A stretch of DNA of 63,781 nt, the filler included, from Octopus bimaculoides (Eukaryota): assembly GCF_001194135.2 (NCBI RefSeq). It is 5 parts of 4 records of this genome, joined end to end, with 100 filler letters (N's around TTAATTAATTAA, not from the genome) between each part and the next. Parts side by side here need not be neighbours in the genome. Positions count along the whole stretch, not along the records: positions 19,552 to 35,189 come from NC_068981.1; 4 more parts are not named here. One strand, given 5' to 3'. Both the position numbers and the translations under genes were made by a program. The notes beneath the pieces were generated by a model. The model did not search any database and was not told the DNA's origin. It saw only the letters and a list, made by a program, of their open reading frames with translations. Below, one piece after another: positions 19,508 through 35,590 of this stretch. The first letter of the stretch is position 1. Every line of letters begins with the position of its first letter.

Positions 19508-19552
19508 NNNNNNNNNNNNNNNNNNNNNNNNNNNNNNNNNNNNNNNNNNNNG

Positions 19553-19673
19553 CCCTGCTTCTCACATGGACAACTGTATGTTGGCTGCTCAAGAGTGGGC
19601 AGCAACAAAAAACCTATTTGTATATGCTCCACAAGGGAAAACAAGGAACATAGTTTACAATGAGGTTTTATAA
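19553..19673 (+). pseudogene. Helitron Pif1-like helicase C-terminus with a +1 frameshift
   Basis: PCFSHGQLYVGCSRVGSNK/NLFVYAPQGKTRNIVYNEVL*; SHGQLYV.CSRV is the Helitron/Pif1 motif VI region. Confidence 0.85.
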
Positions 19674-20446
19674 TCACAACAGCAAGAAAGTATGTACATG
19701 ATCACCTTCTTTTACGAAACTTCATTGACTTTCATATATTTATATTGATATACATATATATACGTGTGTTTGGGTGCGTGTGTGTATATACATCTCTATA
19801 TATAAAGATGATGCGTAGTCTAGACGGCGTTTTTAGATTTCATTATTCTCTTTAACCCGGGCAACGCCGGGTATTTCTGCTAGTAACATATAAAAGAGTA
19901 TGTGATTATGGGGAATGTATGCAATGTGTGCACATAAAGGTAAAATAACCAAGTAGAAAAGATATTTGAAAACTTAGTTCTGCTACAGTCAGTTCACTGT
20001 TTTGTAGCAAGAGAAGGAGAGAGGAAAATTAGAGAAGTGATACTAGAAGGACAGTAAAATAGGTGATTACATACTTAATGTGAACCATGAAATTAAGTAA
20101 AATTACAACCTTAGAGATGAGGTTTCATTTCAGTCAAGGAAGATAAATGAGATAATCCTAGAATTTAAACTGATTAAAAAGAAATGGTAGTGGCAAGAGA
20201 ATTTGATCATTTTTAGTCCAGTGACGCTGCCGGACATGTTTTGGTCTTGCTAGAGAAGAAGATCCCTACCCAAAACAATCATTACTTTAATGAATTCTAG
20301 TCAAGAAATATAGGGAAAACCATACTGAAATTTGAATTATTGGCATATAAGATGCATTCTTGTATAAGACACACCTGTATTATACAAGTCTATTTTGTTA
20401 AAGTGGTTAAAGTGAAAGAAATGTATGATGCATACTTTTATTTTTA

Positions 20447-20805
20447 CTTGTTTCAGTCATTAGACTGTAGCCATACTGGGGCATCGACTTGAAGAAGTTT
20501 TAGCTGAATGAATTGACTCCAGTACCTTTTTTTAAGCTTGTTACTTATTCTATCGATCTCTCATTTGAACCATTAAGTTACAGGTATGTAAACTGGTGGT
20601 CAAGCTGTAGTGGGGGACAAACACAGATACAAATACACACACACACAAACACACACATATACAATGGGCTTCTTTCAGCTTTTGTCAACCAAATCTACAC
20701 AAGGCTTTCGTCAGCCTGAGGCAAGTATACTTGCCTAATGTGTTACAAAGTGAGACTGAACTTGGAACCATGTTGTTGAGAAGCAAGCTTCTTTACCACA
20801 TAGCC
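20447..20805 (-). mobile_element. CORE-type SINE family C
   Basis: Homologous to 55809-56215. Confidence 0.75.
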
Positions 20806-21275
20806 ACAATGTTGTGACAGTATAGTGGAATAAAGTATGAAACCATAATACATAAACTGTTATGGGACTACAGTATTTCAGCTTTGTCTTCTTTCAGATC
20901 AACTGTACAGTTATTTATATTTTGGTCAAGAGAATTGCCATATAGGATGTAAAACTCATATTTCTGGTTGTGTAACTACTTTTGGCCACCAGGAGTGACT
21001 TGCCACTGCTATGGTTTTGTTATCTACTCGTTGGAAATACCTGATAAACGGATGAAGGTTAAACATTCCATCCATTTTTCTGGAATTTTCATTTAGATAA
21101 TTTAATATAACATAGTAATCAAATAATGTAAAACATATGCCAAGTATGGATTATGTATACTAGAGAAGGAGGCATGAGATGGTTTTAAAAAAATTTAGAA
21201 AATAAACATTAAGAGGGAAGTACAAAAAGTCGAGGGACAGAAACAGCAATATAAAGTGAAGCTGAGAGAGAGAGA

Positions 21276-21355
<80 letters not shown>

Positions 21356-21454
21356 GAGGGAGAGAATTAAGAGAGAAAGGTTAAGGAAAACATGTGGGAA
21401 AATGAGAGAAAACAGTATTGTATGTTAACTGAGTATATGTTTGTGTAATATGCT

Positions 21455-21899
21455 GGCACTCCGTCGCTTACGACGACGAGGGTTCCAGTTGATCCGATCA
21501 ATGGAACAGCCTACTCGTGAAATTAACGTGCAAGTGGCTGAGCACTCCACAGACATGNNNNNNNNNNGGAACAGCCTACTCGTGAAATTAACGTGCAAGT
21601 GGCTGAGCACTCCACAGACATGTGTACCCTTAACATAGTTCTCGGGGATATTCAGCATGACACAGAGTGTGACAAGGTGGACCCTTCGAATTACAGGCAC
21701 AACAGAAACAGGAAGAAAGAGTGAGAGGAAGTTGTGGTGGAAGGGTACAGCAGGGATCGCCACCATCCCCTGCCGGAGCCTCGTGGAGCTTTAGGTGTTT
21801 TCGCTCAATAAACACTCACAACGCCTGGTCTGGTAATCAAAACCGCGATCCTATGACCGCGAGTCCGTTGCCCTAACCACTGGGCCATTGCGCTTCCAC
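21455..21899 (-). mobile_element. SINE family A, full length (55-bp assembly duplication around the 10-N gap)
   Basis: Head GTGGAAGCGCAATGGCCCAGTGGTTAGGGCA through tail GCGACGGAGTGCC. Confidence 0.85.
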
Positions 21900-22547
21900 A
21901 TGTTTGTGTGAAAATAAGGAGAAAAAGATTAAGAGAGAAGGCAGTCAAAGATACAATAGGGTGTGTATGAGAGAGAATGAGGGGAAGAAAGAAGTGTAAA
22001 GTCGAAGCGTAAAACTATACAAAAAGAGAAATGATAGTCATGAAAGAAAGGTTGTGTATGTGTTAGAGAGTAAATGAAAACAATAATGGAAAAATAAAGA
22101 AAAGAAAAGAAATGTGAGGTTGAAAGGGTGAGAGAAGTATGACGTGAATAGTGTTGTGAAAGATTAAGAGAGAAATAGTAATGGTGAGGGACAAGGATAG
22201 AAAAAAGGGAGAATTAAAAAGGGTAGGAAGAAGAAACTTCCAGAATATGAAGAGAGAGGCAGTGCTCCAGCATGGCTGCAGTCAAATGACTGAAACAAGT
22301 AAAAGAGTAAAAGAGAGCGAGAGAGACAGAAAGTGAGTGAGAGAGAGAGAGAGAGAGAGAGTGTAATAGAGCAAAAGAGAGCAAGCCTGAGAGAGAGAGT
22401 GAGCAAGTGAGAGAGAAAGGGAGAGAGAGAGTGAGAGGTAGAGATTAAAATGAGTTTAAAAGGGAAAAAAAGAAAGGGAAAATAGACAATAGTGAGATAA
22501 GAAAGAAAGAAATGAAAGGGAAAGAAAACTGCGTGAAATATTTGGAA

Positions 22548-22977
22548 ATATTGGCAAGTTTTGGCAGAGTAATTTTGGTGGAAGGAGTAAGTCAGTTTAA
22601 TCAACCCCAGGGCTTGCCCCCAAAATGGTTGAAAGGCAAAGATGATCTTGGCAGCAACTGAACTCAGAACATAAAAAATGGACAAAATACCACCATTAGT
22701 ATTTTGCTTGGCATGCTAACTATTCCACAAGCTTGCTGCCTTGGGCGCAAGAAATATTGGTTTCATATTTTGGCACAAGGCCAGCAATTTTGGGAAAGTG
22801 GGTAAGTCGATTAGGTCGACCCTAGCGTTCAACTGGCACTTATTTTATCGACCCTGAAAGGATGAAAGGCATAGTTGACCTTGGTGGAATTTGAACTCAG
22901 AACGTCAAGATGGATGAAATGCTGCTAAGCATTTAACCTGGTATGCTAATGATTCAGCTAGCTCGCCACCTTTGGGG
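22548..22977 (-). mobile_element. Two tandem family B SINEs
   Basis: Two consecutive reverse-complement copies of head and central domain. Confidence 0.75.
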
Positions 22978-23941
22978 AGAAAATTTTGAAGGAGAAACTA
23001 ATAATGGAGAGGACAAAAAATAATACATGTGCGCTCGCACATGTATGTGAGAGAGATAGAGNNNNNNNNNNNNNNNNNNNNNNNNNNNNNNNNNNNNNNN
23101 NNNNNNNNNNNNNNNNNNNNNNNNNNNNNNNNNNNNNNNNNNNNNNNNNNNNNNNNNNNNNNNNNNNNGAAAATGCAGGCAAAATAGAGATAAAAACGAG
23201 TTAGAGTTGTGTTGAGGAAACACTATAAATAAGAGAGATATTTATTGCTTGTCAGAGAAGAATATTAAATGACATGGGAAACACAAACTTGCAATAGTTA
23301 AATGAAATCTGAGAGGAGGAGAAAAGATATATTGAAATACTATTACAGAAATTACAAGAAAAAAAAAGGTGAGGAATGCATAAGGGATTGGAGAGGCTAG
23401 GCAAAAGGAAATTAGACGAGAAAATTACGAAAAAGAAGAAAAATATGAAATACTTTGAAGTAAATGAGACGAATATGAAAAATCGAGAAGAAAGAAAGAC
23501 TGAGATTTAGATTGATAGGTCAATGAAGTCTGTTTCGAATTTACATGGCCATTTGACCAGAGCTTTATCTCTTTTCGTGACGTTAAAGAGATGGAGAGCA
23601 TAAGACACTCCTGAACGAGTCGCCAGTCCTTTGCAGAGTTAACTCTAACTCCAACTGTCCCTGACACTCATTTTCAGCTGAGTAGAATTAACCAACATGA
23701 AACGAAGAGCTTTGGTTCATCTTCTTTCTGTCATATCTCTAAACCTGTTCTCTCTCACACACAAGACAGAAAAGAGACGATGATGATCGTGAAGAAAGAT
23801 GAAGATTTAGGAGTTAAAAGAGATGTTAGAACTGGTATTTTCAAAAATAGTATATAGGGAAAAAGATATAGAAAACAGAGTGACAAGCAAAATAACAATA
23901 AAAGGGAAATTTAGCATAGTAAAGGAGGTAGAGGCGTCAGA

Positions 23942-23982
<41 letters not shown>

Positions 23983-23992
23983 NNNNNNNNNN

Positions 23993-24037
<45 letters not shown>

Positions 24038-25451
24038 GAAAAGTCAAAAATAGGGAACAGAACTGAAACAGGGTGAAATAAGTAAGGAATGAGAAGTAGA
24101 AAATAGGAATGAAAGTAAGGGAGCAAAGCTGCAGTAGGCTGGCACCTTGGTTAGAGGACATGTATTGGAAATAGATACAAAGTAATTAAATAAATAGAAA
24201 AATAAAGTATTGACTGTAAAACCCCATCCAGGTTTTGGAGAAACACTCGAAGATGCGATAAAAAGGAGAAAAAGTAGGAGGAAAGAGGGCAGGAAGGTTC
24301 TTAATATTTTATTCTAAAACAATTTTTATTCCCTACTTTTACTTTAGCCTTCTTTTCATTCAGCACCAATGCTCCGAACCATAAAACTAAATTGCTTTGT
24401 ATGCAGTGAAGAGATGTGTTTACCGAGTACTACTAACACAAGAAAAATGGTGAAGCTCCCCAACTGAAGGGAACTGCTTTATTATGATGCAGATTTACAA
24501 CAGAACCAGTTATCCAAGACTAATCGACAGAATGCTAAAATCCACTTTCTCTCTCACCTATAGCGATATAAGTTAAGTTTTACAAACTGGAGAAATAGAA
24601 CTTTATTTATAAAGCAGAATATTCTATATTTATATTAGTGGTGGTAACACACACGTTGAGTGGAAGTGTGTGTGTCTGTGTTAGCTTTTACACATATTTG
24701 TTAATATAGTTTAATGCTAAAATTACATCCGCGTTCACACACACGCACGCGCACGCACATAAACATGCGCGCGCGCGCACATAAATACACGCACGCTCGT
24801 GTGTTTATGCACACGCACGCACACACACATACATACACGTTCTAACCCTTTCATGTATTAAGTTTGAGATTATGAAAAAGGGATACGATGATATCGAAAT
24901 AAGGTGGAAAAAACATGACTTGTGAAATGACGAGTTTACCTAACAGAATACTTAGTAAACATCTTACCAACTCTCTCCAGTCCCCAAAATAAGCAGTGAA
25001 AATCTTGATAAATTATGAAAGCATCATAAATTCTCTTTAATATTTTTAAACTGAGGGGAATAATAATAACATGGAATATTTATATAGCACGCAGAATCAT
25101 ATACGGTAAGTAATATTGCCTTTAAAGTTATTTGTTGTTTACATCCACCTTATCCCTGGTTCAACAGTCCTATGAGTAGAGACATTCTGTGACCATCTTG
25201 CTTTTGTTCAAAGTGTATCTTCGATTACATTCATGCGTCGCCGACGACTTTTTTTTAAAGTTAGTAATGTGTGATTTTATTCTTTTGTCAGACATTTTAG
25301 AGTGATTGTTGTGATACCTCACTTAATCGAATTTCCTCCTAACGATACTTAGCTTTACACATATACATACATATATGTATGTATACACATACACACACAC
25401 ACACACACACATGTAATAAATAGTAAATAATGTATGGTATATATACTCTCT

Positions 25452-25812
25452 CTTTTTACTCTTTCTCTTGTTTCAATCATTTGACTGCGGCCATGCTGGA
25501 GCACCGCCTTTTAGTCGAGCAAATCGACCCCAGGACTTATTCTTTGGAAGCCTAGTACTTATTCTATCGTTTTTTTTTGCCGAACCGCTAGATTATGGGG
25601 ACGTAAACACACCATCATCGGTTGTCAAACGATGCTGGGGGGACAAACATATACACACATACATATATATACATATATACGACGAGCTTCTTTCAGTTTC
25701 CGTCTACCAAATCTACTCACAAAGCTTTGGTCGGCCCGAGGCTATAGTAGAAGACACTTGCCTAAGGTGCCACGCAGTGGAAATGAACCCGGAACTATGT
25801 GATTGGTTAGCA

Positions 25813-25814
<2 letters not shown>
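25452..25814 (-). mobile_element. CORE-type SINE family C, head clipped at (TA)n
   Basis: Matches 55809-56215 up to TTAGCAAG, followed by (AT)n. Confidence 0.85.
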
Positions 25815-25845
<31 letters not shown>

Positions 25846-25848
<3 letters not shown>

Positions 25849-26125
25849 CTATATTAAATCTCTGAGTGAGATATAAATAGTAGCAATACGGAATCGTAAC
25901 ATATAACTGCTAACCAAGGGTGGCGTCCTATAAAGGATAGTGCTACTGACATTTATAGCCCCAGGAAGACATTTCTTCCAGCTGGCTAACGACACACATT
26001 CTGTGTCCGATTAGTATTTGCGAGGGGAGGTTATCACTCCCATCTCTAGCCTAAAGTGATACACACGGACTCGAGTTTCTAAGTGGTCACCCGTCCTCAG
26101 TGTGTGTTAATCACCAGTTAGTGAT
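25846..26125 (-). repeat. Downstream part of the ~357-bp retrozyme-like repeat
   Basis: 25846-26020 is a direct repeat of 31556-31729 (about 16 differences in ~175 bp by manual count); contains a hammerhead. Confidence 0.8.
26055..26115 (-). ncRNA. Type I hammerhead ribozyme (minimal, dimer-type stem III)
   Basis: GTGAT-TA-ACACACA CTGAGGA CGGGTGACCACTTA GAAAC TCGA GTC^CGTGTGT-ATCAC. Full core, GUC triplet, ~11-bp stem I with a 2-nt bulge, palindromic loop III. First pairs of stems I and II are mismatched. Confidence 0.75.
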
Positions 26126-26376
26126 TAATATTTTTATTATGATTATACAATCAGACACAGAGGGGGACATTACAGGACATTACAAACACACAAAAATGAT
26201 ATCTGAATTCGGATGAGTATATTTACAAATGACATTCATTTATGTACAATTAACTGACTTTGTTTTTTCCTTTTTGACACCACCTTTTTTTTTTACCTAA
26301 ATTAAAAATGAAATCAGGCAGATTCACCTGGCAGCCTGTAAGGCCCAGTGACTATCTATTTTCCTTTCATCAATGA

Positions 26377-29300
26377 TTAAGCTGGGTTACTCACACCCAC
26401 CTTTCTCATCATATCCTTCCATCTTTGCTCATATACCCTACGCGACAGGGTTTTCCACTCCAGCCCCATCTTGCTCTTCAGATGGTATCTGAAGTAATTT
26501 AGCAAACCTGGGCCAGAGATGAAGGATCCTGTCATGACACCTTCCATTCTTGTTCTCCATATGCACTCTTTCAGTACTGCAACTGTACAGAGAAAACATA
26601 CCTCACTTTCCTTTGAGAGTCTGGCTGGCGGTACCATCTTTATTATGGATCCAGCCAATAGCCGTACTCTTTCCAGATGTGGTAACAAGTGTTCCACGAA
26701 AACCATCAAGCTTGACAGCTCCCGACATTGTACAAAAGTGTGCTGGATGGTTTCATCGTCCAGCCCACATCTTGGACAAGTCGGTGGCACTGAAACTCCG
26801 TGCCTGGATAACTTTTTGAGAACAGGTAGAGCATTCCTGTAGCACTGCCAGGCTAGGCATTTTTGTAATTTTGGTAATTATCCAAATACCCCAGTCTAAC
26901 AGTCCTACTAAACAGGTTGGCGAGTTGGTTCTCGTTAAACCCCAGAGCCGCTCCTAAGACGTCATCGTTTCTAAACTCCACCAGTCCCCTATAGAACACT
27001 GAGGTGATATTCCTGCTGCCGGCTTTGCCCGCCTTTTGCCATTCAGTCAGGTTTCATCTTTTTATGAAACCAGGCTTAAATCTTACCATAGTGGTTGGTC
27101 ACTATGAAGAAACCCTCCACTAGCGGGCTCCACACCTTATCACGTTCCAGGTGGTGTCAGAAATGTCTCAGCCACAACGCATGTCTGCACATCATTAACC
27201 AAGGCATCCCTAACCCACCCTTTAATGGTTCCTGACAGCAAACAGAGCGCCTTACAAATGGCTTTCCTCCCTTCCACAAAAAGTAGAAAAGAAGTCGTTC
27301 CAACTTGTTTATCCATGAATCGGAGCAAGGGACAACAGTCAGGTGGTAGGTGATTACAGATGGTGTCCTTTCTCAACATCTGCAAGATGTCTACCTCATT
27401 CTCCTCAATGAATATAATTGCTGCATCTACCCACAACAGAGGTCTTCTGGACTAGTGCCTCCACCTTGCCTGCCACCTCACTCCAATTCTCCGTCTGGGA
27501 GTCTGGTCCAAACCAAACTCTAAGCAACTTAACAGGACCATCGGTCCAGTGCCCCATGACACTGGCCGATATCGACTTGCTCCTCCAGGTGCTGAGGTGC
27601 AAGCCGATTGACTTGTCCTTGTTAATTTTTGCTCCTGCCACCGCCTCGTATCCTCTGATAGCATCTTCTACACGAGGTACCTGTGCTTCGTTGGAGACGG
27701 TGAAGGTGACGTCGTCCACATAAGCAGAAACAGATTTATCGCCTCCGATTTCATCAGGGTTACCTCCCAACCTCTCCAACTTCCGCAGCAATGGCTCAAG
27801 AGCTAACACATACAGAAGCGGAGACAAGGAACACCCTTGACGAACTGAGTGTAACCGTTTATCTGGACTGTGGACTTGATGCCGCTGTACATAGCGGAGA
27901 TCCATCTGTGGAAGACCGGGTCCAGCCCAGCCGCTTTGATGACCGCCACCAGGTACTGATGGTCGACCCTCTCAAATGCTTTACTTTTGTCTAAATGGAC
28001 CATTGCCCCACTTTTGCTGGCTAATTTATCCACCCTGTCTAAGGTGTAGCGGTTAAGGTGAAGATTGTCCTGGATTGACCTGCCGGGTATTGCACATGTC
28101 TGTGCTTTCCCGACAAGTTTCTCCACGGCAGCCGTCAACCTTTTCACTAGTACCTTGGCCAAAATCTTTAACTCTACATTAAGTAGAGTTATGGGCTGGT
28201 AGTTACTTATATTATCCCCCTTGCTCGGGTCTTTCTGGACCAGCGTCACCACTCCCCAGCTCACAACACTGTGAATTCTCCCATTCTGTTGCCAGTTTGT
28301 ATAGACGCTGGCCAGTATATCCCCGAACAAGTCTGGCATGCTACGGTAAAACTCATAGAGCAGACCATCCAGCTCTGGCGACTTTTCCCTGGCACACTCG
28401 GCCAACAACTCTTTTACCTCTGCGGGAGAGATCAGTCCTTCACAATGCCCCACCTCACTTGCCGAGAGTTGCAGTCCACTGGCTAGGAAGTCCTTTAAAG
28501 CTTCCCCATGCTAAAGTGGACCACTCCCCCCCGAACAACTGTGCGAAATGCTGGTAGAAGACCTTCTGCATTTCCTCCTGTCCATAGATCTAGCGCCGCT
28601 GTTTGTCAGTTAAAGACTTAATGGGGGCATTTTTACTTCTCTGACACTCACTCGGCGTGCCCATCTGGCAACATTGATACCTTCTTGTTTCCCTACACGT
28701 AGCTTAGCTCTGACTCTGCAACGTTCATGCTTGGCATTGAGGTGATGGTGCAATACCGCTCTCGCCACCAGCACTCCAGGTGTAGAGCCAGACTCCACAG
28801 CCTCGTCTAGGTTTTTAACTAGTTCGCCCTCTTTTCTAGTCCTATCTAAACTTAGCTGTTTGCTAAATCTAATGAACTCTGAATGGATGGCTCTTTTGAG
28901 GGTGTGCCACCATCTATTATTAATGATGGTGCCACATAATGCCCTCTGTACTAATTCCTTAATCCGGGTACGAAAGGCTTCACAAGTCAAAATAGACTTG
29001 TTCATCTTCCAGTACCAGGGATCCTGTCTATGACATTTATCTAGATGCACCTCACACGTCACAAATTTGTGATCCGTGTAAGGTACAACAAAAAAATGTG
29101 GACAACTAAAAATATTCCTATCTCGTTGCCTAACGAATACCCTATCTAAGTACTATCTGCACAAGCCGTTGTTGTTACTCCAGGTCCACTGTGGAACGCT
29201 CGGCTCATCCAGTCAGTAATGGTCTACCAGATTAAAGCTCTCTAGTAGACCCTTGAGGCTAGGATTTCCCTTCCTATCAGTTGAGCCAACTCTATCCACT

Positions 29301-29736
29301 CGTGCATTGAGGATAGTGTTAAAGTCCTCTGATAAAACTACAGTTTTTGACGTCACTAGGTAGTGCTCCAGGTCTCAGAAAAAACCTGACTGCCTATGCT
29401 CGTTAGGAGCATAGACAACTACAAACCTGAAGGATTGCTTACTCACATACGTTACATCTAGGACGACCAGCCTACCTTCTGGGTCCAAAAAGACATTACT
29501 TACCTGTAAGTCCAAGTTCTTCCTAATAAGGACTACCACGCCCCTCCCTCTTCCTTGGCTAGGAGAAATAAATTTCTTGTAACCGTTGAGAGAGGTGAGA
29601 ATGCTTGAGGTTCGCTCATCTTGGACTCGGTTACAATGGCTACATCTATACTGTGTGCCCTGAGGTCGTTCAGGAAACAAGCTTGTTTCCATTTCGACCC
29701 CAGTCCACACACATTTATACAGCCTAACTTAATCAT
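26377..29736 (-). pseudogene. Tx1-like ORF2 (AP endonuclease, reverse transcriptase, CCHC zinc finger), frameshifted
   Basis: MIKLGCINVCGL, VVVYAPN, DFN, YLDRVF, TDHK (APE); PITLLNVELKILAK, DKSKAFERVDH, VRQGCSLSPLLY, AYVDD (RT); CPRCGLDDETIQHTFVQC. Confidence 0.9.
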
Positions 29737-29789
29737 CGATGAAAGAAAAATTAAACTTTCTACTTATGGTTGCGACAGGGTGCATGGCA

Positions 29790-31228
29790 GTTTCTGTCTG
29801 ACTGCCTCTCCCTCTCTCTCCTTAGTAGACATAGCCGCTGGGCTTTTTACCGGCATTGCCACCATGCTCTGGGTTGGTGTGGCTGCCGGAGTAATTATTA
29901 ATTTCCCATCTGCTATGTCTTGGATGATATCATTCACATCCTTTTTTTTTCAGGTGTTCTTGCAGAGTTCTGTCCATCCACCCATCATTGCACACCTTTG
30001 CATAGCGAACGTCAGACTTATTGTCTGACATTCTGCTTAAATATTCTTTCGTTTTTTGAGTCAAAAGAAATATATTTGTCTTTTTTTTTCCTTTCTGGGT
30101 TTATGGGGTAGGATTTGGTAAATTTTGTCCCCACGAACACAGTGCCAAAGGGGTAGGATTGGGGAATTTTTCATGTTGTCTGTTTGCATTGTTGTTTTTT
30201 TTTTTTGTTTGGGGAGGTGAGTCGATGGAACTGGACTTCTTCCTCATGTGCATCACTTGCGTGAACTCCATCTCACTGCTTTCCTTGTTATCGCTCTTTT
30301 GCCTTCTTGCTTCTTCTACAGTCTTTTCCGTCATTTCCTTATTTTCTGTTTCGGATTTTTCTATTTTATCTTTTTTTTTGTTTTCTCTGGCATATCTTTT
30401 GCCTTGCTTTGGGGAGGGGCTTCACTCTCATTTTTCTTCGCCGTCTTGGTGCAGGTGGAATGAATGTGGCCCTTCTACCCACATTTGAAGCACCTGGGCC
30501 TACGTCCTTCCACCAACACACGTATCGTGTGCCCCTCCTCTACAAAAATCCTATCGGGCAACTTCTCTAAAGTTTCATTGGAGGCTTGTACCACCATCTG
30601 CAGCGTCTGGCCTTTCCAATTTTGGGTGTCCTTTCTCAACATCTGCAAGATGTCTACCTCATTCTCCTAGTTGAATATAATTGCCGGTGCTACCCACAAC
30701 AGTTCGTAACCTACAGGTATTTCTCCCCCTACAATTTTGGCCATTCTGCGGCCCAGATAGGTGGGTAGCAGCATTATCTCCTTATTTTTCAGTGTTCTGG
30801 TAACTATTTCTTTTGCTACATTGGCCAACTGGAACTGTGCTTCCACAGTTGCACTACATATTCCTCAGCCAATGTAGCATATTTTGTTCCAGATAGGTGC
30901 CAAGCAGCTCTCCACTACCTCATTCTTCGCTTCTGTAATTTTTTTTTTCCTTTATACTATAAATTTTATATACTGCAGTTCTGGCATTTATTTCCACCAC
31001 CATTTCTGGCAGCGGAATTAATTTGGTTTTGCCGTCGACCTGCTTCACCATATTGCGGTAACTGAACAGTTGTTCCATTTTAAAAGTCATTTCTATTTCC
31101 TTGCCACTGACCGCGACAGAAAAACTGTTTTTTTCCTTGTTATCCTTAGATGCATCACTTTCTTTTCCCATAGCAGGGAAGTCCTTTCGAGAATCCAAAT
31201 TGAAATTCATATTTTCAGTATTTGCCAT
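29790..31228 (-). pseudogene. Tx1-like ORF1, disrupted
   Basis: Starts MANTENMN; zinc knuckle VEGRRPRCFKCG*KGHIHSTC near 30455-30510; followed by a K/E-rich linker. Confidence 0.75.
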
Positions 31229-31462
31229 AATGGCAAAAACAAAAACAACGCCCAGAACAGGGCAAAAATTAATTTTTCACAGAAGTTTTTCAACCAATAA
31301 AATATTTTTTAAACACTATTTTCGTCTCGCAGGGCGAAAATTACAGTTAACAAGGCAACAACAGTTCAAATTCAACAATAACTCAATTCAGCAATTTGTA
31401 AAATAGCATAAAACATTCCAAAAACAAACTCACATATCACGGCAATCAAAAATGCGGAGATG

Positions 31463-31729
31463 ATCACCAGCTAGTGATGAAAACTCATTCCACTCGCAAA
31501 ATACTATATGCTTTTTCCAGCGACAAACTGTCACTGATCTTGAAAAAGGAGAAATAAGCTGTATTAAATCTCTGAGCGAGATATAAACAGTAGCAATACG
31601 GAATCAAAACATATAATTGCCAACCAAGTGTGGCGTTCTATAAAGGACAATGCTACTGACGTTTATAGCCCCAGGATGACATCTCTTCCAGCTGGCTAAC
31701 GACACACATTTTGTGTCCAATTAGTATTG
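31463..31729 (-). repeat. Upstream part of the ~357-bp retrozyme-like repeat
   Basis: Homologous to 10913-11175 and 25846-26020; ends at the TSD; cut off at 31730 by a Helitron fragment. Confidence 0.8.
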
Positions 31730-31926
31730 TTTCACTTTTCACACGTAATACTGAAATAGTGTAAGAGATAAGAGATTGCTCTGGGCTCACATTAGGCAAG
31801 AGGTTGAAAAATTTTTTAACCCATGACACTGCATAGACCCTAAGTAAGGCATGTGTAAAATTTGAATGAAATCAGTTGGGTAATTCTCAAGTTTTAGTGA
31901 TGCACACATTCTCAGCTTTATATATA
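31730..31926 (-). mobile_element. Helitron 5-prime arm fragment
   Basis: Minus strand TATATATAAAGCTGAGAATGTGTGCATCACTAAAACTTGAGAATTACCCAACTGATTTCATTCAAATTTTACAC, a typical non-autonomous Helitron 5-prime pattern. Confidence 0.6.
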
Positions 31927-33346
31927 CTAGCAGACGTACCCGATGTTGCCTGGGGCGGTTTGTTTGCCTGGTCAGCATAGTCTCCCACAAAGTAGAACTA
32001 AAGAAACTGAGGCGAAGCAGCATCATGCGGCTGCAGGGAACCAATTCTATGGTAAATCTGCCCCTGCACTTTACAGGAAGGCATGATGTTGGAACCGAAG
32101 GAAGTCATTTGGAACACGCAATTGTAGGCACATATCTGCTTGAGAAAGTCATGAGAATAAGGAGACACTCCTGTCAAAAGGGGTAGAGGATCTTGCAGAA
32201 GAGGTACTGTAATCTTACCATTGGAGCAGCACATGCCGGGAGTTTCTCCAGGCCACTTTTTAGCTCCACAGCATTGGCAGATTGTGAATATGCAGCCTAT
32301 TTGAACATCAGGGTGATTACTGTAGTCAATTGTAGGATCGTAGTTGAATGCTGTCCTAAGTCAATCTGTGTGTTGTGCTGCAGTCTCTGAAGCTCGTGCA
32401 GCAGCAGTAGAGGAAACATTTCTTGTTCAGCGTGCTGAATGTTGCTCGTTGCCCTGGGTGGCTTGTTGTGCAGCAATACGTGCTAACCAATCACAATGCT
32501 GCTCTTCACTTTCCCTTCTTCACACTGAAACCATCTTAAGTGCATTGAGAGAGTCCCTCCTGGCGGCGTCCTTGGCAGATTCATTTGCACACATACGTTT
32601 ACTTTTCTTTGCAGCATTTGTTTGCCTGCCAATATTGGATCTTTTGCGTCAAGGCATGATGGAAAATTTGTAAAATGTAGTTGGCAAAAATGTTAATCAA
32701 ACAGACCGAATTAAGGATTTTTAATTATGGGTAAGAGTTTTGAAGTGGCTAGTTTAAGTTGGAATAATCATATGAAAAAGAGCGTTCACATCTAAACAGA
32801 GGCAAATTGTAACTCGCAAATGAATACTCCTGGCAGTACTGTGCAAGCAGTCGATAAGAACTCACCACAGCTGACAAAGTAAAGTAATGATTTTTCCAGC
32901 TGGGTGTGTGCTATGTTTTTTGCTGGCTTGAGCCAAATCTTAGGCAAATTGAGAGTAGTCTATTTACGTTGGGGTGCAGAATTTTGAGGAAAAAATTATA
33001 AGGAAAAGTATCCTAAGTCAAAGAGAGCACACATGTCAAATTTGGTGAAATTGGGTTGAAAATTGTAGGAGTAGAAGTGGTTCACATAGCACAGACAGAC
33101 AACTTGCCGTTTAATATATAAGGTCAAACACATACCGTTGCATAGACGTGGTAGGTTCAAATCCTAGGCGAGTTGAGGGTAGTCTATTTATGCTGGAGGC
33201 GCAGAATTTCGAGGAAAAAATTATAAGAAAAAGCATCCTAAGTCAAAGAGAGCACACATGTCAAATTTGGTGAAATTTGGTTGAAAATTGTAGGAGTAGA
33301 AGTGGTTTACACAACACACAGACAGACAACTTGCCTTTTAATATAT
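31927..33346 (-). mobile_element. Internally deleted Helitron with duplicated 5-prime terminus
   Basis: 3-prime CCCAGGCAACATCGGG hairpin then CTAG|T at 31927; ~227-bp tandem duplication of the 5-prime arm (~32935-33120 and ~33160-33346). Confidence 0.85.
32000..32657 (-). pseudogene. Helitron RepHel N-terminal region
   Basis: AFNYDPTIDY...CQCCGAKKWPGETPGMCCSNGK...YNCVFQMTSFG...KVQGQIYHRIGSL, with stop codons. Confidence 0.9.
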
Positions 33347-34143
33347 NNNNNNNNNNNNNNNNNNNNNNNNNNNNNNNNNNNNNNNNNNNNNNNNNNNNNN
33401 NNNNNNNNNNNNNNNNNNNNNNNNNNNNNNNNNNNNNNNNNNNNNNNNNNNNNNNNNNNNNNNNNNNNNNNNNNNNNNNNNNNNNNNNNNNNNNNNNNNN
33501 NNNNNNNNNNNNNNNNNNNNNNNNNNNNNNNNNNNNNNNNNNNNNNNNNNNNNNNNNNNNNNNNNNNNNNNNNNNNNNNNNNNNNNNNNNNNNNNNNNNN
33601 NNNNNNNNNNNNNNNNNNNNNNNNNNNNNNNNNNNNNNNNNNNNNNNNNNNNNNNNNNNNNNNNNNNNNNNNNNNNNNNNNNNNNNNNNNNNNNNNNNNN
33701 NNNNNNNNNNNNNNNNNNNNNNNNNNNNNNNNNNNNNNNNNNNNNNNNNNNNNNNNNNNNNNNNNNNNNNNNNNNNNNNNNNNNNNNNNNNNNNNNNNNN
33801 NNNNNNNNNNNNNNNNNNNNNNNNNNNNNNNNNNNNNNNNNNNNNNNNNNNNNNNNNNNNNNNNNNNNNNNNACATGTATATAAATATATACATGCATAT
33901 AAATATACATGTGTATATATTGTATGTATATATATATACATATATATGGGAGAATTTACAAAAAAAACAACAGACGAGGACAGGTGGTGTAAACAACAAA
34001 AGGATGTATTAGTTTAACGCTCGGGAATAGGGAAAGTTTTTAACGTTTTGAGCTACGCTCTTCAACAGAAAGAATACGGAGAAAAACACGGAGAAAAAAG
34101 AATTTGAATGTTGCGGTCAGCAATCTATCATGGTATATATATA

Positions 34144-34200
34144 CTAGCAGCTAAGCCTGGTTTCACTCAGTCTGTTTGAATGATGTGGCTGTGATCGTTT
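34144..34200 (-). mobile_element. Probable Helitron 3-prime terminus
   Basis: Minus strand CTGAGTGAAACCAGGCTTAGCTGCTAG|T: degenerate hairpin followed by CTAG. Confidence 0.45.
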
Positions 34201-35590
34201 TCGGTTAGGCATAATCTATAACAGCGTTTCTCAACCTTATCATTTCGGGTCCCCTGTTTCGATTGGAGCCTCCAGCTGTATGAAAATTTCCTGACTCCCC
34301 ACCCCTGTCAGAAAACAACTTCAGGAGTTGTGAAGAATGAATCTGTGCATAGTCTGTTTCTGCGAGCTATTCTATTGGACCTCTGTCTAATCATTAAAAC
34401 ATTAATTTAAATATGAACATAGAAAGAAATTATACATTAATCCCTATTTTTGTAAGCAGTTGTATCCATAAAAATTCTATTTGCAGAGAGCACAAATTGA
34501 AAGAAGATATATGAAATGGACGTGTGTATGTGTGTGCGCGTGTGTATGTGAGAGATAAAGAGAGATAGAGTTAGTGAGTGAAGGTGTGTGTCATGATGAT
34601 TGACGTCTTTTAAGGTACACACACATACATAGAAAATGTGAGGTCATCGTATAAAATTTTTACAATAGTTATGGAAAAGATTATGTTAAATTTTTGAAAT
34701 GCAAATATGTGAATGAAAATTAAGTTCAGACCTCTACATGATAGCTAGTCATGATAAAAATAGCAGCCAAATCTTCCTCAAAACACCCTACTGTCTTAAT
34801 CCAACAATTCAGCCTTATTATGTAGTTTGAATGAGAAACTGTAACTAAAGATTAAGATTATTAACCCCACAAAGAGGTGAAAGAAGAGAGACAGCATAGC
34901 GAAAGTTTTGGCTGACTGTCATCCTGTACTCTCCTTGTTGCTAGCAAAATGGTATATGCCGGCTGTGTGAGTAAGTGGTTGTTTTAATGGCGGAACAAAC
35001 AGGGGAATTCCATTAGAAAATTTTTTAGTCGATTTTCTCGGTAACTATGGCAGCTAGGAAAAAAATACAAACTGCATTCCAGTCTATGCACCCGTCTCCA
35101 CATGTGTGCCATTTTTCACGCGAATCCACCCAGCTGTTTGGCCGTGAACCTCAAGACAAGAAAGAATACAACGGTCGGCCAACTTCAATNNNNNNNNNNN
35201 NNNNNNNNNNNNNNNNNNNNNNNNNNNNNNNNNTTAATTAATTAANNNNNNNNNNNNNNNNNNNNNNNNNNNNNNNNNNNNNNNNNNNNATATATAACGT
35301 ACATATACTTAAGACTTAGTTGTGATCGTAATTGTGATACGCTGCTGACACAGAAAATGTGTCCTTTTGGGCATTCTATTTTCCTTGCTGGAAGGATTCC
35401 CAACCTATGGGCAAAGAGGGGTTAGATGATAGGGGTGGTGTTTTCAAAGGGCTGACATCTGTTGTTATGTCCTGTTATTATTCCTACCCTATTTGTGTAA
35501 CATTGTTCGTTTTTTTTTCCCGTCCTTGTTTTTGTATACATTCGCTGCTTTCTTCCAAGGAGTCTAATGCTCTTAGATTAGTTTTTCTTT

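Follow-up and report, generated by a model that had tools for sequence, protein, structure and literature searches.

In the genome of Octopus bimaculoides (assembly GCF_001194135.2), a long interspersed nuclear element (LINE) of the L1/Tx1 group lies inside a non-coding repeat unit of about 357 nt that carries a type-I hammerhead ribozyme motif. The locus belongs to a window of 63,781 nucleotides, the whole stretch of joined DNA under study, and we examined the 15.6-kb piece of it at 19552-35189 (NC_068981.1); positions are those of the whole window. LINE and hammerhead share the minus strand, as the initial annotation of the window had stated, and all the protein similarity between the repeats that flank the LINE is on that strand.

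A LINE inserted in a hammerhead-bearing unit

The sole long dispersed direct repeat near the LINE in this piece is a pair of 173-nt sequences, one on each side of it (repeats A and B; Table 1), which are 90.8% identical at a spacing of 5710 bp (blastn E 6e-65) and differ by 16 mismatches, 13 of them transitions. Between these repeats the LINE has its own target-site duplication (TSD) of 16 bp, identical at 15 of 16 positions and with no extension possible on either side. Because this duplication marks them, the LINE ends can be placed at 26126 and 31462, and a TSD of variable length is what L1/Tx1-group LINEs produce. Subtraction of the LINE and one TSD copy from the repeat spacing, 5710 - (5337 + 16), leaves 357 bp, the unit length that had been derived before. 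The single-copy segments C and D then rejoin as one 357-nt unit, and the pre-insertion element reads, in the minus sense, B (173 nt), C (77 nt), the 16-mer, D (91 nt) and A (173 nt), with a total of 530 nt, equal to 1.49 units. What the 173-bp repeats represent is the portion of the 357-bp unit that this 1.5-mer contains twice, and they are not long terminal repeats (LTRs); as first proposed, they reflect the periodicity of a hammerhead-motif unit split by a LINE. With only 1.49 units and a single hammerhead, the initial description of the target as a 'tandem repeat' is generous. Together, these features show the anatomy of an insertion, a LINE inside a hammerhead unit with a 16-bp TSD.

ORF2, the second open reading frame (ORF) of the LINE, matches the Pfam profiles Exo_endo_phos (33.2 bits) and RVT_1 (52.6 and 41.3 bits). 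Its C-terminal match to zf-RVT (19.4 bits) is below the Pfam cut-off, and the zinc-motif columns C1022, C1025, H1034 and C1039 are invariant among the relatives (alignment A1). In a comparison with the PDB, which includes L1 and R2 and no Tx1 ORF2, residues 55-728 of the stitched ORF2 were collinear with residues 55-743 of human L1 ORF2p (E 6.5e-34). With an N-terminal apurinic endonuclease-like (APE) domain, a reverse transcriptase (RT) and a C-terminal Cys/His motif in ORF2, the LINE is, judged by its domains, a member of the L1/Tx1 group. The CCHC knuckle of the ORF1-like region aligns with the ORF1 knuckle of the LINE's closest relative. Protein and profile searches with the stitched ORF2 found no close copies of the LINE: the closest protein-database relatives are unnamed metagenome proteins with at most 29% identity (35% over a short stretch). 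Their source names are only generic or automatic, and a clade assignment by way of these names was dropped. The Tx1 clade, which RT phylogeny defines as Tx1L, Keno, Kibi and relatives in distinction from L1, is a putative placement for this LINE. Exact look-ups of two ORFs of the window returned nothing on record. The 3′ untranslated region (UTR) is 251 nt long and contains AATAAA at 26138->26133, 7 nt before the LINE 3′ end. As ORF2 has at least four frameshifts and, in the stitched frame, 11 stops, this copy of the LINE is dead.

The LINE also contains a 78-nt direct repeat, 91% identical, with one copy in ORF2 just past the RT (27362-27439) and the other in the ORF1 region (30625-30702). 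Since ORF2 remains collinear with its relatives through this site, with no change in length, a patch conversion or a template switch seems a better explanation than an insertion.

Table 1. Features of the LINE and of the hammerhead element, in window coordinates.
Feature	Position	Strand	Basis
(TA)15 microsatellite adjoining the 3′ end (minus sense) of the hammerhead element	25816-25845	.	Sequence
Repeat copy A, last 173 nt (minus sense) of the 1.5-unit element	25846-26018	-	Repeat comparison
Segment D, 91 nt, single copy, contains the hammerhead	26019-26109	-	Sequence
Type-I hammerhead motif	26062-26106	-	Own descriptor; sub-threshold match to Rfam RF00163
TSD copy at the LINE 3′ end, ATCACCAGTTAGTGAT	26110-26125	.	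Sequence
Degenerate, apparently full-length L1/Tx1-group LINE, 5337 bp	26126-31462	-	Pfam domains; L1 ORF2p collinearity; tblastn of relatives P0001-P0003 and P0008
ORF2 with APE, RT and zf-RVT	29736->26380	-	Pfam
ORF1-like region	start 31228	-	CCHC knuckle near 30519-30451 (VEGRRPRCFKCGxKGHIHSTC)
LINE 5′ UTR, about 234 nt			
TSD copy at the LINE 5′ end, ATCACCAGCTAGTGAT, 16-nt near-palindrome	31463-31478	.	15/16 identical to 26110-26125
Segment C, single-copy stretch of 77 nt from repeat B to the target site	31479-31555	-	Sequence; joins D as a continuous rod in the rejoined fold
Repeat copy B, first 173 nt (minus sense) of the 1.5-unit element	31556-31728	-	91% identity to 25846-26018

The hammerhead motif and its unit

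The minus strand from 26106 to 26062 reads ACACAC-A-CUGAGGA-[14 nt]-GAAAC-UCGA-GUC-C-GUGUGU, followed by an outer stem GUGAU/AUCAC. The core elements CUGAGGA, GAAA and GUC occur in type-I order at 26100->26068. Helix I (ACACAC/GUGUGU) has 6 bp and is extended by the outer stem as a 5-bp closing stem (26114->26110 with 26060->26056), which overlaps the LINE target site. Helix III has 2 bp (A-U and C-G) and the loop UCGA, and helix and loop together form the perfect palindrome ACUCGAGU (26069-26076). Cleavage is predicted after the C at 26068 of the GUC at 26070-26068, 58 nt past the last base of the LINE at 26126, in agreement with the distance of about 58 nt noted initially. Our own descriptor, which required the core, at least 6 of 7 pairs of helix I, at least 3 bp of helix II and a short helix III, had a single match in the 15.6-kb piece; 300 simulated pieces, searched on both strands, gave no match.

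The 16-mer that the LINE duplicated is ATCACYAGCTGGTGAT. The insertion point lies 10 nt upstream of helix I, in the same orientation. In the predicted fold of the unit RNA, the 16-mer makes the stem that closes helix I; the insertion spared both the hammerhead and this stem, whose 5′ strand is provided by the duplicated 16-mer. The rebuilt 357-nt monomer has a G+C content of 42%, and its predicted circular fold, at -107.7 kcal/mol, compares with -83.7 +/- 4.8 kcal/mol in dinucleotide shuffles (n=200; z = -5.0; 0/200 as low). In this fold the 16-mer pairs continuously with sequence just 3′ of the hammerhead and the rod crosses the rejoined site unbroken, so the rejoined junction looks native as far as the model goes.

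In size, G+C content, tandem arrangement, self-pairing and hammerhead type, the unit fits the published description of animal 'non-LTR retrozymes', for which units of 170-400 nt have been reported (Cervera & de la Pena 2020, PMC7229834). Like them, it combines a 357-nt length with a G+C content below 50% and a head-to-tail arrangement of more than one unit, and it has no LTR, primer-binding-site or polypurine-tract features. Its monomer is predicted to be strongly self-paired, and helices I, II and III of its type-I hammerhead have 6, 4 and 2 bp, the last with a palindromic tetraloop as its cap. It differs from them in having 1.5 units with one hammerhead, a weak helix II and a LINE as interruption, and in being known from a single DNA copy. 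For metazoan type-I hammerheads with such a helix III, a dimeric mode of action in tandem repeats and poor cleavage by the monomer have been described (PMC4209133; PMC7229834); by analogy, the lone dimer-type hammerhead at this locus would be a poor cutter.

Penelope-like elements offer a further comparison. The hammerheads of their pseudo-LTRs are also of type I, with a minimal palindromic helix III thought to be dimeric (PMC4209133). They too have direct repeats that arise from partial tandems, and a bias towards (TA)n has been reported for some of them (PMC8557442). Here a (TA)n tract adjoins the hammerhead element and may mark its integration site. What differs is the coding element enclosed by the repeats, here an APE LINE. 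We noticed no Penelope-type RT or GIY-YIG domain, with Pfam applied to the LINE frames and the other frames of the piece inspected by eye only. A TSD, or a continued short interspersed nuclear element (SINE), spanning the whole hammerhead element and defining its own insertion was looked for, and none was found. Neither the hammerhead unit nor the LINE has an A tail.

Two mechanistic steps of the earlier proposal of a retrozyme-targeting system fail or find no support at this locus. One held that flanking hammerheads would cut a LINE-containing RNA out of a read-through transcript. The partial unit upstream of the LINE (31728->31479) does not reach segment D and so contains no hammerhead; the single hammerhead lies in the single-copy segment D, downstream of the LINE. 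Because only this one is present, no LINE-containing circle can be released here. The other held that the LINE could in turn mobilise the retrozyme. Its 3′ UTR has no similarity to the unit (local score 15, against a shuffle mean of 18.7), and the two have no common 3′ tail of the kind seen in SINE-LINE partnerships. In addition, this LINE copy is dead, and the literature favours Penelope-like elements as partners: animal retrozymes have been tied to them (PMC7229834; bioRxiv 10.64898/2026.07.22.740005) and proposed to be their non-autonomous derivatives (bioRxiv 10.64898/2026.07.22.740005). What moves animal retrozymes is a question now being settled towards Penelope-like elements, and the locus poses no challenge to that.

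Chance nesting and targeted insertion

We regard the locus as probably an ordinary chance nesting of a LINE in a retrozyme-like element. A 1.5-unit copy (~530 bp) of the ~357-nt non-coding hammerhead-motif element would have landed beside the (TA)n tract; such a 1.5-mer is what rolling reverse transcription on a circular or multimeric RNA would be expected to yield. A full-length L1/Tx1-group LINE would then have inserted by target-primed reverse transcription, duplicating the 16-bp near-palindrome, and both elements would have decayed since, to the present 9% divergence of the 173-nt copies and the frameshifts and stops of ORF2. Nothing at the locus is active now. Since the neighbourhood is dense in transposons, nesting is to be expected here.

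Several observations weigh against this account, some on the side of the ribozyme and some on the side of the insertion. Helix II of the hammerhead is weak, with only 4 bp, two of them G.U, beside a C.A mismatch. An alignment to the full Rfam model RF00163 (Hammerhead_1) reaches only 17.9 bits, short of the gathering score of 34, at an E of 0.023 when 65 nt were searched; Rfam searches of the whole piece and of 301 nt returned no hammerhead match. The hammerhead segment is available in one copy, and the unit is accordingly a putative retrozyme. Such points could mean that the hammerhead is a decayed or fortuitous likeness and the unit an ordinary short tandem duplication or satellite fragment without ribozyme biology. 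The catalytic fold would fit that, lying about 10 kcal/mol above the minimum free energy (-8.3 vs -18.1 kcal/mol for a 61-nt segment), as would the single copy of the hammerhead segment, which leaves its conservation without comparison. We nevertheless consider it improbable, for the full conserved core coincides with a 6-bp helix I, a closing stem and a palindromic helix III of the form usual in metazoan type-I hammerheads, the simulated pieces gave no match to the descriptor, and the unit fold has a z-score of -5. Far less credible is the notion that the 173-bp repeats are terminal repeats, LTRs or Penelope-like pseudo-LTRs, of a composite element that includes the LINE-like body. Direct repeats do surround an RT-encoding body, and Penelope-like pseudo-LTRs do contain hammerheads (PMC4209133). 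We reject this identity, however: the body is an APE-type LINE and not an RT with a GIY-YIG endonuclease, the LINE has its own 16-bp TSD inside the repeats, the 77 and 91 nt of single-copy sequence between LINE and repeats rejoin into a well-folding unit, and the hammerhead is in that single-copy part, outside the repeats.

On the side of the insertion, the TSD coincides exactly with a near-palindrome, ATCAC-C-AGCT-A-GTGAT, 7 of whose 8 pairs are palindromic, and such non-microsatellite 16-mers occur at ~8e-4 per position in the piece. A near-palindromic TSD means that both strands were nicked right after GTGAT. The first-strand nick, GTGAT^GAAAA, is unlike the L1 consensus TTTT^AA (PMC1950540), and the LINE has no poly(A) tail. 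The palindromic TSD, the nick site and the missing tail fit a selective endonuclease better than a promiscuous one, which is suggestive only. They are also what would be seen if the LINE family homed to the unit family, its endonuclease recognising the palindromic site next to the hammerhead as that of Tx1L does in Tx1D. Read-through LINE RNA, perhaps trimmed by the hammerhead 58 nt downstream, would then anneal to the nicked target and prime reverse transcription. The LINE has the orientation of the hammerhead, which its insertion left intact together with the closing stem, and many Tx1-clade families target repeats or transposons (Tx1D, Mariner-N4_AMi, LTR elements, U2 genes and microsatellites; PMC4494074). 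Against this stand the single insertion, a Tx1 membership that is only putative, a prior of 50% for the shared orientation, and a hammerhead copy that is of the dimer type, weak in helix II and alone at the locus. The palindrome argument is post hoc, and a preference for a short motif or a hairpin would suffice without specificity for the unit family. No hammerhead motif was found near the LINE on the contigs of the two closest relatives looked up (P0001 and P0002, on L001 and L002), a negative that matters little because these relatives are too distant (27-29% identity). We therefore think family-specific homing unlikely, and favour over it chance or, at most, a preference for a short motif or structure.

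In its strongest form, the LINE family would home to ATCACYAGCTGGTGAT as the closing stem of a retrozyme hammerhead and ride on retrozyme transcription, a proposal that we hold to be quite doubtful. Read-through LINE RNA would be trimmed by the target hammerhead 58 nt beyond the LINE; the 3′ tag so left on it would be complementary to the nicked target and would prime reverse transcription. If true, this would be the first LINE with a ribozyme-bearing retroelement both as its target and as the processor of its 3′ end. R2 provides a conceptual precedent: it is a LINE with a specific target, and a self-cleaving ribozyme within a co-transcript determines the ends of its RNA. This HDV-like ribozyme reportedly processes a 28S co-transcript. 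The R2 ribozyme is, however, encoded by the element, lies 5′ and is of the HDV type, whereas the hammerhead here is part of the target, sits 3′ of the LINE and would process its RNA only hypothetically.

Target specificity needs many copies, and one insertion cannot show that the LINE seeks such repeats; nor can a single copy decide between preference and chance in the choice of site. Tx1L in Tx1D of Xenopus and Tx1-Mar in the crocodilian Mariner-N4_AMi are likewise L1/Tx1-group APE LINEs at a defined site within another repeat (PMC4494074; PMC1950540). They differ from the present case in that many copies occupy the same site, with in vitro nicking also available for Tx1L, whereas here there is one copy, and in that the target here would be a ribozyme-bearing retroelement and not a DNA transposon. 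In a pattern scan for the hammerhead segment, viral contigs gave nothing, and a match on a metagenome contig (L003) reads like bacterial coding sequence and was set aside as a chance match. Our literature search turned up no work that connects hammerhead or retrozyme repeats to Tx1 or target-specific LINEs, and no account of hammerhead repeats in octopus.

The initial annotation is thus partly supported: its anatomy of a LINE in a hammerhead unit is right, and its 'retrozyme-targeting system' is a hypothesis drawn from one dead copy. What the locus shows is the clean nesting of two element types that are already known, an L1/Tx1-group LINE and a hammerhead-bearing, retrozyme-like repeat. If homing were true, ribozyme-bearing retroelements would be added to the known targets of LINEs; the target would be new and the behaviour would not, as Tx1 families that target other transposons (Tx1D, Mariner-N4_AMi and LTR elements) are already known (PMC4494074); the effect of target-encoded ribozymes on LINE RNA ends would then become testable.

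Neighbouring repeats and assembly features

A SINE-like repeat occurs in the piece as three copies or fragments, 67-90% identical, at 20442-20787 (+), 25462-25814 (+) and 22257-22321 (-). The second of these is truncated at the (TA)15 tract beside the hammerhead element. Helitron-like 3′ ends, consisting of a GC-rich hairpin followed by CTAG, lie at 19856-19883 (+) and 31954->31927 (-). Near the latter, a Helitron-like N-terminal ORF fragment (32360->32001, minus strand; CCSNGKITVPLL...YNCVFQMTSFG...GQIYHRIGSLQP) has no Pfam match and presumably resembles the N-terminal part that is conserved among Rep/Hel proteins of Helitrons.

Long GA and CA/TA microsatellites are found at 21260-21360, 22300-22440, 23930-24040, 24720-24840 and 25350-25420, and such tracts explain sub-threshold Rfam matches to mir-297 and mir-3149. 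An exact 55-nt duplicate (21503-21557 and 21568-21622) around a 10-N gap at 21558-21567 is most likely an assembly artefact; the piece is also interrupted by runs of N at 23062-23168 and 23983-23992. A 189-bp tandem duplication, 90% identical (32934-33119 and 33158-33346), stands directly before a 526-N gap at 33347-33872.

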